A stretch of DNA of 64,000 nt from assembly GCA_020536535.1 (NCBI GenBank), contig JAHLWZ010000796.1:91120-155119 (forward strand), given 5' to 3'. Origin of the DNA: Pelomyxa schiedti (lineage: Eukaryota; Protista; Evosea). The translations under genes were made by a program, and so were the position numbers. Within the stretch, counting starts at the first letter, position 1; the number at the start of each line of letters is the position of its first letter. Shown here piece by piece: positions 105 through 9,025 of the stretch. A model generated the notes under the pieces. That model was not told the origin of the DNA, searched no databases, and saw only the letters and a list, made by a program, of their open reading frames with translations.

Positions 105-1027
105 TTATTATGTGTAGATAGCCAATCAAAATATTTCTTACTAGTTTTTCTTCTTTTGGGCAAAGCCAAAATAAATAAATTTAGAAGCAGCTGGCAACAA
201 GGCCACGCCTATAAGTCGGGATTAGAAGAAGCAATTTATTTTGTTGTGGTACTTACACGGCATTTATGGAAGCTGTATCGGATGTCCATATTGAGGTGTA
301 TGTGCTAATTTTCACTTCACCAGCATACTTCATTCCACTGAAGGTGCAAGTCTTCTTGATTATGTCTATTGCTGGATCACATGTAGTTGTGTCAGTGTCC
401 CCACAGGTTGCAATTACACCTATTTTCTTGGCCTTCATCCTACGGTTGTATTTTTGGGGCAAGAAGAAGCTCCAGTTTCCATACCTTTCTGCAATTTCAT
501 CGTGCCATGCCCAACTTTCATTGTAGAACGCAGTCCAGCGATCCATATAAGATTTCATCTATATATGTCCAAGACATAAAACATAAGTAAAAAGAATTTT
601 GCATACAATAACCAACCTGAGCAGTCATTGACCAGAAGTAGACCGGTGTGGCGTGAATGATGATATCCGCCTCCACAATTTTTGGATAAATGGCATTCAT
701 GTCGTCATTAAGAACGCATTTCATGGCGCGCCCAGTAGCACGACAGCCGTGGCAGTCCGTGCAGCTGCCAGTGAAGATGATGAGATAAAGGAGGTTTACA
801 GCAAACCCAAAAAGGGCAGACAGGAGACACACCCGCCAATGTGCTTTCCGTGCAAATACACCTTTTCGACCTCGGCACCTCGTTCTGTTGCTGCGGCAAT
901 GGCGCAGTCGGCAAAGAAGTCCCTTTTGAGTGTCTTAATGACTGAAACGAAATGAATCGCCGTAGTTTCCTCATACGTACGTGCTCTTTCCAACTCGAGG
1001 GCTCCCCACAACAACGAGAACTTTCAT
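105..1027 (-). CDS. Iron-sulfur flavoprotein / NADPH-dependent FMN reductase family (multi-exon; 3' end approximate)
   Basis: Manual splice gives MKVLVVVGSPRVGKSTDFFADCAIAAATERGAEVEKVYLHGKHIGGCTDCHGCRATGRAMKCVLNDDMNAIYPKIVEADIIIHATPVYFWSMTAQMKSYMDRW. It has the GSPR FMN loop, a CX2CX2CX8C cluster motif and the TPVY...K...DR signature. Confidence 0.85.
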
Positions 1028-1142
1028 TTGTTTTTTAATAGTGAAAATATGAGGGGGTTTTCTTTTATTTACGTTAAATTAGGGTTTCTCTTCAAACGGC
1101 GCCATCATAATTACTGCGAAGTAGCTGATTTCTGTTCTGAAA

Positions 1143-4100
1143 TTATTCGTGCAGTGAATTCCTTGTGGGTTTCGCCACGGAAATTTGGGCAGCAAGGGCC
1201 AATAGGGCATCTTGGTACATCTTTTCAGGTACCTCCACCACTTTTTCAGTGACAACAGTGGCTAACTCCTGGGTCTATGTGTTTGGTTGTTGTAGGTGGT
1301 AGAATTATAATGAGTTGGTACACAAAAACCAAACCTTAAGAATTGCTTCATAGAACTTGTTCACTGTTGGGATATTGGAGTGGATAAACGGGTTGAGGTC
1401 CACCATGAACTGCTCCTTGTTGCCAAATTCCATTTGGTTTGCAAGGGCTTGTAGTACTTTGCATACAAGGGTAAGTTCTCGCCTAAAGGAAGAATCTGGG
1501 GGCTCTAAATAGCTGTGAATTTGGTGCTATTTTGTTTTTGTTGTTAACAAAAAAAAACTGAAAAGCAGAACCTTTGAGAAGGCCGTACTGCTCTGGAATC
1601 GCGATAGCTGTGCAGTAAAATCGTAGGAACATGAAAGCACCTATGGCTATGTTTTCACTGCCAGGGAACCTTGCTTTTACTTCTTTGTGAATATGGCAGC
1701 AAATCCTCTGAAGCTCTCTAAAAATACCATTGAGAAAGAAAGGTGCTAAACGAAAGGAAGTATACTCAGGGAGGTGTTGCGCCGAACGAGTAATCTGTGT
1801 TATAAATTTCTGGCTCATAAGTTCAAGCAAGATCGTGTTCAACATTCCATCAGACTCCGCGGCCATTTTTGATGGGTCAACTTCCAATTGTGACTCAAAT
1901 AGTTGGACTGAATCTCCACTCTGAAAAAATATTATTACTTGACTGTCATTCAAATGTACCTGGTCAGAGTCCGTGTTGCTTTCTCTGTGCTTTTTAAGTT
2001 CTGGAGGATCGATGATTCAAATTGAAAATTTTCAAGTTGACCAATAAACCTGCAAATAGAACGGCTAAACTTCTAAAGAGATATTCGATGCCAACAATTT
2101 TAGAATAAAATTTGAATGCCTAGCCTATGTATGAGTATGGAGTAGACGGGAAAAAGTACCTTAGATGAAGGGCTATTGTTGCGGAAAAGGGTTGTTTCTG
2201 AAGAGGTGTGTCGAATATCTTCAGAGATTAAGTGAAGCATAAGTTCAAGGCCTGTCGCGTATCAGCTGATAGGGAAAAAATCGAGTTTTTTCCATACCTC
2301 TTCCATGATTGATATATGCATACACCAATGCTTTGCACATATTGTCAGCCATTGTTATATCCATTGTATCAATAATGATATCTACCCTCGCAAAAGAAGT
2401 CTCCATTTTAACCATCTTCTTTAATTTTAGTATTAGCTTTGGGAAACTTTTCCACCTCTTCTATTTCTGGAATATGCCTCTCAGCTTCAGCTCTCTCAGA
2501 ATCCGAAATGCAGGGTAAAGTCACTTTAAGAAGTGAACGTTACAGTTTGACTGGTAAAATGTACCAGGAGTAAATATCAGAGACTGAAAGTTGGGGATCT
2601 CAAATTGACGCCTGCGTTTCCTTAGAAATACAAGTCCTAAAACAAGAATTCCAAGTATAGCACCTAAACATAAAATAGCAACACCAACTCCAACTCCAAT
2701 TGCAACCCCGTGGTTGTCTTGGATGAGCTCAGTGAGACAATTTACTGTTGTTTAAGGCTCACCCTTGGTATCCTCTTCACTGCTTCCAACAAAAATATTA
2801 CATGTTGTGCCGTTCCAGCCTGGGAAGCAACGGCAGAATATGAGCGGCTCCTCACATACAGCATGGCTACAGTTAAGAGAAGCGCAATCATGCGGACGTG
2901 TAGTAAAGGCAAACACTGCAGACGTGGCAGAATCATAACCATTGCTTAATAGAACACGCCAATAATATGTTGTGTTCAAAGTCAACTCTGGATTTTTCTG
3001 TTGGATTCTCCTGATATTGGAGGCTACCTTCTATTATAGTGTAGTCAATGCCCGTCGTGAAGGCGGAAAACACAGCAGAGACAGGTGAAGTCCAGTTATT
3101 TAGGAGGAGTTCTTCCTCAGTATTCATGAAAACGGTGATAGAGGCAAGAGAAAGGGTCTCGGCGCATGGTGCCCCAACCATATCTGATGTAATTGGCATC
3201 CACTGGAGGGTGAGTTCTGAACAAGAGTTATAAATTTTATCACGCAAAAGCAAAAACCTAGATTGGTTATATTTGTCGAGTTATTGGAAGGATAAAGCAG
3301 AGTTGTAGCTGTGGGTAATTTACATATCTTAAAGAACTAGGCGAGTTAGGACCATAGCTACAAAAGGATACAATCTTACTATTTTTTCGCTAGGTGTTGA
3401 TTGCCTCTCTCTATTCACAGAAAAAACTTGCCAAAACCATTGCTGCCTCCCAAAGGTTAAATTCCACACCTTTGAAGTAAATTGTTAAATACAATCGGCT
3501 ACTCAATGAATAGTACCGGAATATTGATTAGACCTGTTAAATCTCCACTTAAGCGAACTGTTTCATTGAAATCTTTTTGTCCATATATGACCTTGTGCAA
3601 AGTTAAAAGTTATCTATTTTAGGGTCCCTCGAATACATTATAGTAATTTTCTGGTTCAGGAGACAAGCAAACGTTTCCCCAATCACCAGATGAATAAAAA
3701 CTCATATTAAATGAGCTTTCAGAAATAAAGTCCCCTCGTAAAGGGTATTGGATAGCAACAACACTTGGAAAAGTAGAAATACACATCTGTAGTTGTTAGG
3801 AAAGAAAACAAAACAGAGACAGACTTACCCAAAAGCTGCTGGTTCTTCCATGTGCTTCCAGGCCTCGCGCATTACGGACTTTGATATCCCAATACCAATA
3901 TCCCTGAGACAAACCAGGTACAGAAATGGAGGTTTCTGAGGTTTCAGAGAAAAAGTCGGGAGGCTCGTGTTGGGATAGAGAAATCCGATAAACCAAATCT
4001 GAGGATAGCCCACAAACATTACCAATGTCAGTGGGGGCATTCCAGGAAAGCGTAACAGAAGAGAGTGGGGTATTAAGATCATCTTTTGGGGTCATTTCTG

Positions 4101-7100
4101 TTACATTACTTGGACCGCTGGGAATACACTTCGTGAAACTGCAACTACTAAGAAAATGTAATAGAAGTTGTTCCTCCAAACCTGCTGGTAAGGGAAGATG
4201 AATTTTCTGCTCCGTTGAAAACCACCACTCTCCAGTACCACAAGCCCTCAGATAAGGTATCTGGCACTAGCCAAGATGTGGAAGTAGGTTGCAATATTTT
4301 CATCAAAGATGCATCACTGAAGAGAATGCCGAGGTTTGAGGCCATAAATATAAATATTGAGGGTGATCCCTGTTGAGGGCCGCAAGGAGTTCCCAGAACG
4401 GGATCAGCTGTGCGCCATGTAAGAGTAATTGGAGCCACGGCAATAGAGGAAGCGTTTGGCAAAATTAAAACGGGTGTACTTGTTTGTTTGAGGAATAATT
4501 AAGGAAATTACGCAAAGGAACCTTGGAGAGACGGCAATGCACACTTCAAAGGCTCCATTAGTTCTATTGTTTGCATAACTGCCTAGTATTCCGTTATCTG
4601 CTCGTACATTCCAGTTGTATTTCCCAGCTTGGAGTAGTGCAGTATATCTGAAAAATATTTATTGGAGAACAACGCTAGAATAAGGTGCCTGGTTTCAGGT
4701 ACAGTGAACCAATATTCAGTCCGGGGAGACAATAGTAAAATATAAATGAAGTAGGAGGAAGACTCCCCACAGGCGTTTCCATTTGCGGTGGTCCATTGGA
4801 AGAAGACTGTACCATTGTAGGAGGTTACATCTACAAAATTGGTTAATTCTCATAGGGAAGTTCAGGAAGTTAATGCTACCAGGGAAATTGATGGAAAGCT
4901 GTTCAGCACTAGGAAGGCAGACCGAAAAATTGCTCTTGGCAAAAGCTGATTTATCATCCTTTTTAAGCAGAAGGTACCAAGAATATGTTTCTCCATCCAG
5001 AAAAGAGTAATCTTGAGAGCGCATCACAAAAGTTGATTGCGTTGAAGGCAGGTGTTGCACCAAGTTGAACGACTTCCCTGTGACATTTAGCACAAATTCC
5101 AATTCTTCATTACAGGATTTTCCCCCTTTGCAAGATTGAGAAGGATTAAAAGTTTCTGTGACGTACAAGTTGCATTCCACCAAAGGGAGACATTCGAGAC
5201 AAATATTTGAAATGGGGATAGTATTGGTGTAACTGGTGATTCTGGATAACAAAGTGCAAAAGTTCGGCTACTCGATAGAGTAGTTGCATTTCCATTGAAA
5301 GATTCAACCCACCAGGTCCAATTTCCTTCAGCTTCATAGGGAGTTGTGACCTCGGCAGCTTCGTTTCCAAGAACTGAGATAAACAGTGTGCCGTTGAGGT
5401 ACACTTGATAGACACCAGGGAAGGAGGAGTTCTTACAGTATGTACCAAAACTATTTATGTTGTAAATGTCTAGCCAATGTGCTACTTGGAAGAGCGATGG
5501 AAAGTTCTACCTTGCTGGCTCCCATTGAAGCAGTGTATTATTACCTCTTATAAGAGCTCCGGGAAGAGGATAAAGAAGAGAAACGGGCTACATTTCACTC
5601 AGAATTGCTTATAAAATTACCAAGAGCTCACCTCAGGAGGACTATTTGTGCAGTCATTACTTACAAATTGTCTAACAGAAGAACTTGCACGCAGATTTCC
5701 ATTAAAAGCCTCTACTTTCCATGATAGAGTTCCAGAGAGTGATGTGAGATTATAAGAGTAATAAAGGGCTCCCGTTGTTTGCCCTATTGGGGCCATGGTT
5801 GTGGAGCTGTTTCCTTGGAGAAGGTGAAACATAGGCAGATAGAAAATATGTACCAAGATATATCGTAAAATTAGATACTAAAGTGGTGCAAGGAATTCCC
5901 CAATCACTGATTGTCCACTCAAATGTCACTTCAGGTGTGACAACAGTCGCATGGTTTGCTGGAGTTGAAAGCTCTATCCCGGAAGGAGCTTCTGGAACGC
6001 ATACCTCCCAGGAAATATTAACAGTTGTTGCACCTCCGTCTATCAGAAAACTAAGTATGTAGAAAGAGGAAACAAACTTGAAAGCCCATTGCTTGTGGTT
6101 ATCCACCAAGAGTATAAACCCGCTTCATTCAAGTTCACTAGGAGAGAAGTAGACGGATGATTCACTGTCGAAGAAACAATAATTTTCCCAGATGAACTTG
6201 CGACAAATACAGTGTATGTTTTCACTGTGCTAATTGAGGTTAGTATTGTTGATTCTGGGAAATGTGTAAACCTCTCGCATGCTTGGCCCCAATCCTCAAC
6301 TGAGTCCCAGAGAAACAGTCTGAATGAATCAGAAGTTGGTTACAAGATATTGTTACCTTGATGATGACGAATTGGAATCATTCGAGCATGGAATCATTGA
6401 AGATATATTTGGAGTAGATGGCACTGTGCTTTCACATACGAAAAATGTGGCACTTGAAGAGGAACTTGTATAGAATCCATTGAACGACTATTTTGCATGT
6501 GGACAACATGTTGTCATTTGTACAATTACCCCTCCCTCCCCAATGTGGTTGTTTCCTTGGATAAATACTTTGACAAGCCAAGTGTGATAGCCAGGAGAGA
6601 CTGTAGTGGTTATCTCTGTTTCAGTACTATTACTGATATTCGTGTCATTTACAAAAAGCTCGAAAAGTTGAGTAGTCACTCCCGCACACTGAGTACCCCA
6701 AGTATTTTGGTATGACCAATCCTTACCCCAAGGTCAACGAACAAGTTTCATAAGAATCGTCCTACCCAGGAAAAAGTGATTACAAGTCCAAGATTCAAAA
6801 ATCTTTGTGTATCTGCTGGCGATACAATGGCGGCGGATGACGGGGCTGCTGCAGTGCATACTATTTTTATTAGAAATAAGAATGTAAATTATTAGGCACA
6901 TACTTGTAAATGTACTGCTCTCTGAAGAAGAAGTGCCCCCGGCGGCAATGGCATCTACATACCATGTATATGTGCCATCACTTAGACCTCCTGGTATAAT
7001 CCAGAAATTCTCGTCTATTGGGTCTGATAAAGTAAGAAGCAGTTATTTTATGAGAAAGTACTTGTGTTCTGTTTATCTGATGTTGATGGGTACCGCCCCA

Positions 7101-9025
7101 AAGCAAAGAAAATGTTATATTTCCTATTTGATATTCCGCACTCTGACCCCCATGAGACAGGGGCAGTCCAGTTCAGGTATACTGGATTTTCACTCCCTAT
7201 ACAGTTGTTGGAATTGTTTAACCATGGAAACTTTACCACAGGGAGTTAAAGACGGTTTCATTGGGGCCGTCACGGTGCAGGTTGAAAAAGAATACGAAAG
7301 GGAACAATTAGTTGTGTCGGATGCCTGAGGAGTAAATCATGCACACAGCAATAAAACTTCACCCCCAATACATACTCCACGGCGTTTCAAAGCAGTTACA
7401 GTCCATGTGTAGTCGGTATTTTCCAGTAAGGATTGTGTGGTTGGTGTCCATGTAAGTGTCGAGCTTTGTGGTTCCGATACAGTCTTTAGTTAACCATAAG
7501 AATATCATTATTTGGGTCTCTTTGGATATACTATGAGTTGATCAACAACACTTGCGCCACCAATAATCTTAATATAATAATACTCAATAGCATCATCACA
7601 TGTAACACCGAAGCTTGCAGAACTCCAAGAAAAAGTAGGCTTCAGTGTGGTGGTGATGACTTCTCCCTTCTATGAAACGTTTAAAAAAATATAATTAAGA
7701 AAAGTAATGGAAAACCTCAGGAGAAATAAGGGATGGAGCTAGAGGGTACTCCTGAACACACACTTTGCATGTGTCAGATGCAGAAAAGTTCGATGAATCT
7801 CCTTCATAAGGTTACACTACAGATGTGAAGAAAGGGTCTTGCTAGTATTTTGCATGGTCACATTCAAATAATATAGGCCGGGTTTCACAGTGAAATTACT
7901 AGATAGTGTTCTGACCCATTCCCACCAATTACCGCAGCCCGCAGTCTCGAGGGTAGGTTTGGAGATTTACAAATACATTAGGAGTGACATACAAAATGGA
8001 GAGAGGATGTTTGTGAGCCAGTCAAAGTAGTATTGAAAGTAACATCAAAGATAGAACATGAACACTGGGTGTCAACTGTAAAAATCCACTGGTAGAGAAA
8101 ACTCTTGGACACAATGACTGGGTAACGGGCAGATACCTGGGTAGGGACTGTGGCACTATGCCCCATTACTACATTGTAAACTGCCATGGTATTTGGAGCT
8201 GGAACACTGATCCTCAATGTTGCTGTTGTGGTGGGTGCACATAACCATGTTGCTTTATCTTTTTCAGAGGTGAGTTTTAATGAGGGAAAAAAATGAGACA
8301 ACAGTAAAAGCCATAATTTTTCTTCGTGCCTCCTGAATCAGCAGAAACAGAGCAGGTTTCTAATGAAAGGACATGAGTACAAATTCCAGGTGGGGAGGAA
8401 GAAAAAACAAAAAAGCATAAGTGTACTTTGAGTATTGTATGCAAGTGACCCAGCATCAACTGCCCAGCCATTATCCCATACAGTGTAAGGTACACTATTG
8501 TCATCTCTAAACAAAAAGGAAAATCAGAAAGCTGGAAAACGTGAGGAAAACGCAACCTGGCCTGGTTGCTCCACCACATCCATCCCAAACAGTCCCCACT
8601 GGGTGTAAATTTAACGGAAAAATTTGGTTGGCCAGTAAACGACGCGTTCAGATTATACGTGTGGGTCCTTTTGGAGATGATGAATTTTCGTATAGGATTG
8701 TTAGATTTGGGTTGGTGATCTGGGTGGTGGGACAATTTATGAACAACAAATACATCAATGGTAGTGTAGTTGAACAAACCTTTCGGCCACGTTGAACGTG
8801 GGCATCGTGGAGCTGTCAGTAACGGCATTGGAAGATGGACATGATACCACAGTCCAATCACTGACATTGAGTGAATTTGGCGGTTGGTTTCTTTTTAAGG
8901 ATGGGGGTTGAAACTGACCAGAAAGTGAGTTTTGTGATGGGATTTGCTGCCCGTGCTAGTGCTCCGAGACAAAGCAGTATTATACAGCTGAGAAATGCAC
9001 ACCGTTTTTCGTTGCGTTCTTTCAT
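1143..9025 (-). CDS. Large type I membrane protein: signal peptide, many FnIII-like repeats, EGF module, one TM helix, cytoplasmic RasGAP domain
   Basis: N-terminus MKERNEKRCAFLSCIILLCLGALARA (ATG 9025). Repeated ~100-aa modules with W...Y...WxWxVxxxNG (e.g. ORFs 4148-4462, 3796-4179, 5087-5404). EGF-like CRCFPGWNGTTC near 2800. TM GVAIGVGVGVAILCLGAILGILVLGLVFL followed by RKRRR at ~2610-2710. RasGAP motifs LFRNNS (~2170-2190), FMFLRFYCTAI, and LTLVCKVLQALANQMEFGNKEQFMVDLNPFI. Confidence 0.85.

Follow-up and report, generated by a model that had tools for sequence, protein, structure and literature searches.

A gene on the minus strand of a 64,000-nucleotide stretch of DNA from the anaerobic amoeba Pelomyxa schiedti (GenBank assembly GCA_020536535.1, contig JAHLWZ010000796.1, positions 91,120 to 155,119 of the forward strand; hereafter the window) probably encodes a type-I single-pass receptor with a stalk of fibronectin type III (FN3) and EGF modules outside the cell and an NF1-type RasGAP inside, which would switch off Ras locally under the control of its own position. 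We give this reading, the best explanation of the observations as a whole, a probability of roughly 0.7. The encoded protein begins with a signal peptide, followed by an N-terminal segment of approximately 125 aa, 13 repeats, an EGF module, a transmembrane (TM) helix with an RKRRR cluster and a 349-aa tail. The gene has already been deposited, as GenBank protein KAH3757767.1 (here P0151; 1935 aa, Pelomyxa schiedti), under a generic automatic name only. What is new is the FN3/EGF TM-RasGAP subfamily to which it belongs, with at least 10 members that share a conserved spacing and a conserved motif.

Gene structure and transcription

An exact spliced threading of the database protein onto the window yielded one gene, located at 9025..1143 on the minus strand and composed of 44 exons and 43 introns, the product of which was identical to KAH3757767.1. 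The reading frame starts with the ATG at 9025 and terminates with the stop codon at 1145-1143. The introns of the whole coding region were 37-112 nt long, every open piece of the locus was located on the minus strand, and the 5805 spliced coding bases contained no stop. When the stop-free stretch 1486-2016 was compared to protein databases, a 286-aa spliced fragment (P0001) was obtained, the 90% cluster of which includes KAH3757767.1. All full-length analyses were performed on P0151, and the window sequence was searched per exon or open reading frame (ORF) piece. Two other gene models were dropped: several exons of the fewest-introns model were wrong when compared to the exact mapping of P0151, and a codon/position weight matrix Viterbi model over-called introns (59-83 exons).

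For window positions 1101-7100, the RNA contigs of three single-cell RNA-seq runs were aligned to the DNA. Sixteen of the 43 introns were confirmed by spliced contigs, with GT..AG borders on the minus strand, and all of them agreed with the threading of P0151. Fifteen of these joints were listed as such (CT..AC on the plus strand, with 37-67 nt skipped), and the sixteenth was obtained from adjacent pieces (6860/6904); a DNA run showed none of the RNA joints. A seventeenth intron (2988-3027) was supported by a 10-letter RNA overhang. The overhang belongs to the contig X2 record 6 (1469 nt), which spans 1101 to 2989 via ten junctions, with the record positions summing exactly to the exons between. 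Its 10 letters (TCTATTATAG) were located at 3030-3039, inside exon 33, so that the intron at 2988-3027 is crossed. On this contig, the final part of repeat 13 is joined to the EGF module, the TM exon and the complete set of GAP exons; the gene is transcribed and spliced as one unit over the junction between the ectodomain, the membrane helix and the GAP domain. Ectodomain and GAP exons on separate transcripts, an outcome for which the initial annotation of this locus had allowed, were not seen at this critical junction.

Of all parts of the gene, the exon model at the N-terminus is the least secure. Of a stop-free minus-strand frame of 205 codons at 8280-8894, only the short stretches 8667-8557 and 8359-8303 are used in the GenBank model. 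The remainder of this frame overlaps exons in other frames and apparent introns.

Domains of the encoded protein

As judged from its sequence and predicted structure, the tail is a complete NF1-like RasGAP and not a plexin-like one. The Pfam RasGAP family (PF00616) matched it with 78.9 bits against a cut-off of 28.3 (E = 6.2e-22) over profile positions 3-207 of 207, and one single exon piece already reached 28.5 bits. The phmmer comparison to the GAP-related domain (GRD) of NF1 gave E = 2e-25, with the arginine finger, the FLR motif and the lysine aligned. The TLFRNNS element (R1691) was aligned to TLFRGNS of NF1, and F1690, R1691 and N1693 were invariant in an alignment of 21 cytoplasmic tails (A2; this gene and 20 homologous tails). 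MFLRFY was aligned to MFLRFI of NF1 (MFLRFINPAI), with F1817, L1818 and R1819 invariant in A2. K1851 of CKVLQALAN, also invariant, was aligned to the lysine of NF1 MSKILQSIAN, which we take to be K1423; G-x-K-E was likewise among the conserved tail residues. The arginine finger (LFRNNS) and the FLR motif that the initial annotation had pointed out in a RasGAP domain are therefore intact. Because R1691, R1819 and K1851 are all retained, the tail should speed up GTP hydrolysis on a GTPase of the Ras subfamily, Ras or Rap, as expected from RasGAP biochemistry.

The AlphaFold2 (AF2) model of the tail, for which 20 homologous tails served as the alignment, was all-helical, with a predicted local distance difference test (pLDDT) value of 86.6 and a predicted template-modelling score (pTM) of 0.86. 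When this model was compared to known structures with Foldseek, the NF1 GRD in KRAS complexes was the best match (E = 3.8e-12, target-normalised TM-scores up to 0.89). SynGAP and p120GAP followed, the range including NF1 being E = 4e-12 to 1e-9. IQGAP was matched at approximately 1e-6 (ranks 23-24), and plexins at E values of at least 1.6e-3 with 8-10% identity. The catalytic domain is thus of the kind found in NF1, p120GAP and SynGAP, with a full-length PF00616 match, the FRxNS finger, FLR, the lysine of KxLQxxAN and the all-helical fold. Known RasGAPs are cytosolic multidomain proteins recruited to the membrane by SH2, C2, PH, Sec14 or SPRED interactions, whereas the P. schiedti protein is predicted to be integral to the membrane, with its GAP domain directly under the bilayer.

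The predicted TM helix had a mean hydropathy of 2.6 over 20 aa and contains several small-xxx-small motifs. The RKRRR stop-transfer cluster follows it, as had been stated in the initial annotation, and an equivalent basic cluster was present after the TM helix in 24 of 24 homologues. The juxtamembrane sequence PNFQSLIF fits the family consensus P-D-F-x-x-L-x-F in alignment A2, with N in place of D. In the AF2 model of the tail, the juxtamembrane blocks were part of the domain with mean pLDDT values of 86-93, and the catalytic module would therefore lie directly beneath the bilayer. The RasGAP domain begins within approximately 10 residues of the membrane, and no other cytoplasmic module was recognised in the tail.

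Plexins have a Sema-PSI-IPT ectodomain, a TM helix and a GAP domain that is split by a Rho-GTPase-binding insert, and they act as Rap GAPs. They share with the P. schiedti protein the layout of a single-pass receptor with a cytoplasmic part of the RasGAP fold. However, the GAP domain studied here is contiguous and without that insert. In Pfam searches of P0151, and likewise of the exon pieces, there was no Sema, PSI, TIG or IPT match at E ≤ 0.01, and no plexin was found at E ≤ 0.01 when the GAP domain was compared to the PDB with phmmer. With the absence of these modules, the contiguous GAP domain and the only remote Foldseek similarity, a plexin relationship of P0151 was rejected, in agreement with the initial annotation. 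Plexins have been reported as confined to choanoflagellates and animals (PMC6374515). The TM-RasGAP family, in contrast, is found in Amoebozoa and CRuMs.

The ectodomain starts with a signal peptide that was read by rule, with a basic n-region, a hydrophobic core of 14 residues and A-R-A (A-x-A) ahead of the predicted cut. The segment that follows (aa 27-151) had no Pfam match, and an Atlas search of aa 28-266 was without a usable match; it may consist of one or two degenerate repeats. Thirteen repeats with a period of approximately 100 aa were found in P0151 with a repeat profile (A1) built from 16 window pieces, 12 of them with E ≤ 1.4e-6 and one marginal. Each repeat opens with Cys-x-Pro, and a second Cys is located approximately 38 residues on. 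The repeats share the motifs W...G..C and Y-x-I and a terminal G-x-Y-x-W-x-V-x-A-x-N-G...S...F-x-V, which resembles the F-G strands of FN3 domains. The AF2 model of repeat 11 had seven strands (pLDDT 76), and all 50 best listed Foldseek matches in the PDB were FN3 domains, with query-normalised TM-scores of 0.51-0.72. In the P. schiedti paralogue P0007, one repeat passed the Pfam fn3 family (38.2 bits versus a cut-off of 25), and the Rigifila ramosa homologue P0067 reached 19.7 bits, below the cut-off. The repeats are assigned to the FN3 fold, a predicted seven-strand beta-sandwich, because of the fold prediction and the Pfam match of the one paralogue, Pfam fn3 being silent on P0151 itself. 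Going by general FN3 topology, one of the two conserved cysteines of the repeat is located at the N-terminus and the other between strands B and C, and a disulfide between them could tie the N-terminal linker to the BC loop. The extracellular portion of the mature protein (aa 28-1555) contains 41 N-x-S/T sequons, versus one in the tail.

The module closest to the membrane has the cysteine pattern C-x4-C-x4-C-x6-C-x-C-x8-C at aa 1514-1542 (Cys 1514, 1519, 1524, 1531, 1533 and 1542), and the EGF signature CxCxxGWxG is present as CRCFPGWNG. The Pfam EGF families scored 17-21 bits on it, which is sub-threshold (EGF_Teneurin, 21.2 and 17.3 versus a cut-off of 24.3). The EGF module at the equivalent position of Rigifila P0067 passed EGF_2 (30.2 versus 22.1). 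The initial annotation had proposed a signal peptide, a dozen or more FnIII-like repeats and an EGF module, and all three were recovered: the first by rule, the repeats by count and predicted fold, and the EGF module by its six cysteines and signature.

Table. Features of the TM-RasGAP gene, with window positions and residues of P0151 (A1, repeat profile; A2, alignment of 21 cytoplasmic tails).
Feature	Window position	Residues (aa)	Strand	Basis
Signal peptide MKERNEKRCAFLSCIILLCLGALARA	8948..9025	1-26	minus	read by rule
Unclassified N-terminal ectodomain segment	8242..8947	27-151	minus	GenBank model only; frames ambiguous
13 tandem FN3-like repeats	2893..8241	152-1511	minus	profile A1 on P0151
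Repeat starts	8241, 7760, 7279, 6858, 6436, 6001, 5652, 5251, 4919, 4541, 4128, 3783, 3324		minus	
Membrane-proximal EGF-like module	2794..2892	1512-1544	minus	cysteine pattern and signature
TM helix GVAIGVGVGVAILCLGAILGILVLGLVFL	2623..2709	1558-1586	minus	hydropathy scan
RKRRR stop-transfer (positive-inside) cluster	2608..2622	1587-1591	minus	sequence
Juxtamembrane motif PNFQSLIF	2572..2595	1596-1603	minus	alignment A2
RasGAP catalytic domain	1437..2237	1673-1858	minus	Pfam PF00616; 7 exons
Arginine-finger loop FRNNS	2172..2186	1690-1694	minus	catalytic R1691
FLR motif F1817-L1818-R1819	1621..1629		minus	NF1 alignment
K1851 in CKVLQALAN	1458..1460		minus	NF1 alignment
Spliced RNA contig X2 record 6	1101..3039		minus	10 mapped junctions and 10-letter overhang

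The downstream neighbour gene (window approximately 974-1078, minus strand) begins approximately 65 nt past the stop codon, and the gene spacing is very tight. Its product starts with MKVLVVVGSPRVGKSTY and, by eye, looks like a flavodoxin or FMN-reductase fold.

Related proteins in Pelomyxa and other protists

The P. schiedti genome (52,367,397 bases in 5337 contigs) was scanned for further members of the family. The Pfam RasGAP family matched approximately 45 loci (80 exon matches), and profile A1 matched nine other contigs (C676, C605, C825, C803, C386, C952, C822, C849 and C846; loci L043-L060). All nine had the same order on one strand, with several repeats followed by a TM helix and a RasGAP domain. 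Within 12 residues after the TM helix there were 2-7 K/R (4-7 with the exception of one locus), LFR[SANL]NS was located approximately 450-540 nt past the TM helix, and a GAFxFLR element (FLRFYNTAISVPE-like at most of the loci) approximately 530-565 nt past the finger. In the case of contig C605, the FLR element was not picked up by the motif scan. At least 10 P. schiedti loci, including the gene studied here, thus have the repeats-TM-RasGAP order, and an additional locus on contig C802 (L028), with no match to the repeat profile, brings the TM-RasGAP loci to at least 11. Among the short RasGAP loci L001-L030, a TM helix was found in three of the four that were evaluable, the others being too short and the motifs strict. 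By its TM and finger sequences, the locus on contig C849 looks like the closest paralogue. Three loci correspond to full-length GenBank proteins (P0007, P0025 and P0070), with 10-11 repeat matches each.

Homologues with the same TM-GAP module were also found in other protists. The Mastigamoeba balamuthi protein P0006 (1930 aa) has seven repeat matches, a membrane-proximal EGF module and the TM-GAP unit, so that the combination of FN3 repeats, TM helix and RasGAP recurs in another amoebozoan. Two proteins of Rigifila ramosa (CRuMs), P0067 and P0106 (2568 and 2742 aa), have 12-19 repeat matches; P0067, the one that was Pfam-scanned, carries FG-GAP (integrin-alpha-like) repeats as well as EGF modules, one of them membrane-proximal. 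In Gocevia fonbrunei (Discosea), P0040 (EukProt EP01089_P001501, 1455 aa) has PSI, TIG/IPT and TIG_plexin matches, a TM helix and a canonical RasGAP tail. A plexin-like ectodomain without Sema is here combined with an NF1-like GAP domain inside the TM-RasGAP clade, an observation that bears on plexin origin. P0113 of Balamuthia mandrillaris (1003 aa) had no match to the repeat profile, a count taken apart from any Pfam scan. The TM-RasGAP module is also carried by many metagenomic (environmental) sequences of various lengths and ectodomains. P0114 (a Joint Genome Institute metagenome protein of 4200 aa), P0112 and P0136 form a sub-clade in which the TM-to-finger distance is shorter (109-112 aa) and the protein continues at its C-terminus for an additional 480-500 aa or so; ConA-like and bacterial Ig-like domains are mentioned in the name that P0114 has at its source. 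The TM-to-finger distance was 109-149 aa in 24 of 24 proteins, with 123 aa in the gene studied here.

A quick maximum-likelihood tree, midpoint-rooted, was built for 45 GAP domains sampled from the 150 best matches to this gene. Twenty TM proteins and 10 N-truncated ones formed one clade with a Shimodaira-Hasegawa-like approximate likelihood ratio (SH-aLRT) support of 97, and none of the four TM-less proteins was placed inside it. The P. schiedti gene was found in a clade of 12 rows, all with a TM helix (support 96), together with Mastigamoeba and the Pelomyxa paralogues and adjoining Rigifila. The Rigifila and Gocevia members come from independent transcriptome assemblies. On the evidence of these sequences, the TM-RasGAP architecture is old and not a Pelomyxa invention, and it extends outside Amoebozoa. 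The proposal of the initial annotation that the receptor was independently assembled holds relative to plexins, the GAP domain being NF1-like, but not for a lone gene, given the at least 10 P. schiedti loci and the members in Mastigamoeba and Rigifila.

Proposed function and alternative explanations

Soluble RasGAPs are controlled mainly via recruitment to the membrane. Unlike these, the P. schiedti protein would reside permanently at the membrane, and control would therefore be exerted via place or density, the ectodomain determining where the protein sits, how it clusters or which conformation it takes. The ectodomain might bind a surface, a particle, a neighbouring membrane or a soluble ligand, upon which the protein would be concentrated, clustered or excluded. 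Ras would then be switched off locally, for example shaping or ending Ras-dependent cups and pseudopods. Speculatively, the PDFxxLxF juxtamembrane motif packed on the GAP domain and the TM helix rich in small-xxx-small motifs are candidate coupling routes.

Gating by ligand or adhesion is suggested by analogy. The R3-subtype receptor protein tyrosine phosphatases (PTPRB, PTPRJ) have an all-FN3 ectodomain, a TM helix and one catalytic domain. In the mode of action proposed here, the P. schiedti protein would formally resemble these phosphatases, or plexins in its outcome. The layout is the same, an FN3 array being linked via one TM helix to a single "off-switch" enzyme, the action of which may depend on its position and clustering in the membrane, although the likeness is one of analogy only: phosphatase activity stands against GTPase activation, the tails are not homologous and the lineages are different. 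The initial annotation had drawn an analogy to the transmembrane kinases of amoebozoans. In Entamoeba and other Archamoebae these single-pass receptors, the ectodomains of which are rich in repeats, form expanded families; they differ in having a kinase rather than a GAP output and Cys-rich rather than FN3 ectodomains.

The substrate might be Rap or another Ras-like GTPase and not Ras proper, in which case adhesion and the cytoskeleton would be controlled via Rap. We regard this as unlikely but as a serious candidate. SynGAP, a dual Ras/Rap GAP, was among the best structural matches, and the YDPTIEDSY effector loop is common to Ras and Rap, so either class may be present. On the other hand, the closest sequence and structure matches were to the NF1 GRD with KRAS, and plexins, which act on Rap, were the most distant matches of the GAP fold; neither point is decisive. 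The genome contains 31 exact YDPTIEDSY-coding sites versus none for a reversed control (e.g., C48:28934-28960 and C803:105914-105940). The large Ras/Rap family to which these sites point, alongside the approximately 45 RasGAP loci, would supply candidate substrates.

It is doubtful that the protein is a constitutive, ungated RasGAP, always active and kept at the membrane by its TM anchor, that sets a basal Ras-off rate, with the FN3/EGF stalk serving as glycocalyx, spacer, sorting or turnover element. Such an anchor would fit the GAP domain as the only domain of the tail, with no recognisable regulatory module, the lack of a ligand-binding head domain recognised at the N-terminus by Pfam or Atlas, and the sequon-rich, repeat-only ectodomain. 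The at least 10 paralogues have varied ectodomains, yet they strictly keep the TM-GAP spacing and the juxtamembrane motif. Moreover, across species the module is joined to FG-GAP propeller, PSI/TIG and ConA-like domains, which is the pattern of a receptor family. We favour a receptor role over a mere anchor because diverse ectodomains are carried on a rigidly conserved TM-juxtamembrane-GAP unit.

An inert scaffold of the IQGAP type, which would bind GTP-bound GTPases without hydrolysis and act as a transmembrane Ras effector or anchor, is very improbable. It would be consistent with the long branch of this gene and with the IQGAP GRDs among the structural matches, but these matches were 4-6 orders of magnitude weaker than those to NF1, IQGAPs are without the finger arginine, and the arginine finger, the FLR arginine and the lysine are all present here and family-invariant. 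It is hardly credible that annotation or assembly wrongly merged two neighbouring genes, one for an FN3 protein (secreted or anchored) and the other for a small RasGAP: exons 1-13 are taken from the GenBank model alone and the RNA contigs are fragmentary, some with retained introns, but one spliced contig connects the final FN3/EGF exon to the TM exon and continues as far as the 3' end, the spliced coding sequence is free of stops, and the same order recurs at nine other loci and in the Rigifila and Gocevia transcriptome assemblies.

Several observations weigh against the receptor reading. The 13 exons mentioned above correspond to 9025-7024, most of which lies beyond the stretch covered by the RNA check, and a single study with a single sample was the source of all the RNA runs. 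Two introns of the GenBank model are of the GC-AG type (7842-7802 and 4688-4648), neither is confirmed by the RNA joints shown, and the borders of the exons at these introns may be mis-modelled. In the published P. schiedti single-cell assembly there are 7.4 introns per gene, 98.4% of them GT-AG, and the two GC donors among 43 introns compare with a genome-wide 1.6% (PMC8887013). The annotated introns 2988-3027 and 6488-6568 were read through unspliced by some RNA contigs (X2 record 8, X3 record 10 and X1 record 2), which points to pre-mRNA or DNA in the libraries or to intron retention; read-through of 6488-6568 would give an in-frame stop. The Pfam fn3 family (PF00041) had no match in P0151 or in twenty exon/ORF pieces. 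The gene is on a long branch (1.04 versus a median of 0.67) with at most 42% identity to any relative, and the function of this paralogue may have drifted. Furthermore, an active GAP that is located at the membrane at all times might work without any gating, specificity for Ras or Rap is not readable from sequence, and surface location and enzyme function are predictions.

To our knowledge, every characterised RasGAP is soluble and membrane-recruited, and among transmembrane GAPs of the RasGAP fold plexin is the one textbook example. In the searchable literature, outside which most subscription journals lie, no paper was found on a transmembrane or receptor RasGAP or on a RasGAP in Mastigamoeba. 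In a study on the origin of plexins, PSI, IPT and Ras-GAP are regarded as distinct building blocks that existed beforehand, and such receptors are unmentioned (PMC6374515).

The TM-RasGAP family comprises at least 11 loci in the P. schiedti genome and is represented in Archamoebae, Discosea, CRuMs and a large number of environmental protists. Next to plexins, it would be a second and independent way to switch a Ras-family GTPase off from the cell surface. The family adds to the receptor-enzyme architectures known outside animals, and its PSI/TIG- and FG-GAP-bearing relatives are relevant to how plexin- and integrin-like receptors arose. The Gocevia PSI-TIG member gives a hint that plexin-like receptors were possibly built on an older TM-RasGAP chassis, and not from scratch in the choanoflagellate-animal ancestor. 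More speculatively, and with the odds clearly against it, TM-RasGAPs could represent one-component "contact-to-Ras-off" sensing older than the split between Amoebozoa and CRuMs, on the chassis of which plexin-like receptors were possibly built. The 10 or more FN3-type Pelomyxa paralogues would then be part of a recognition repertoire for prey, symbionts, substrate or self, each extinguishing Ras or Rap at contact. For large phagocytic amoebae, the family offers a testable handle on how Ras activity might be restricted in space.

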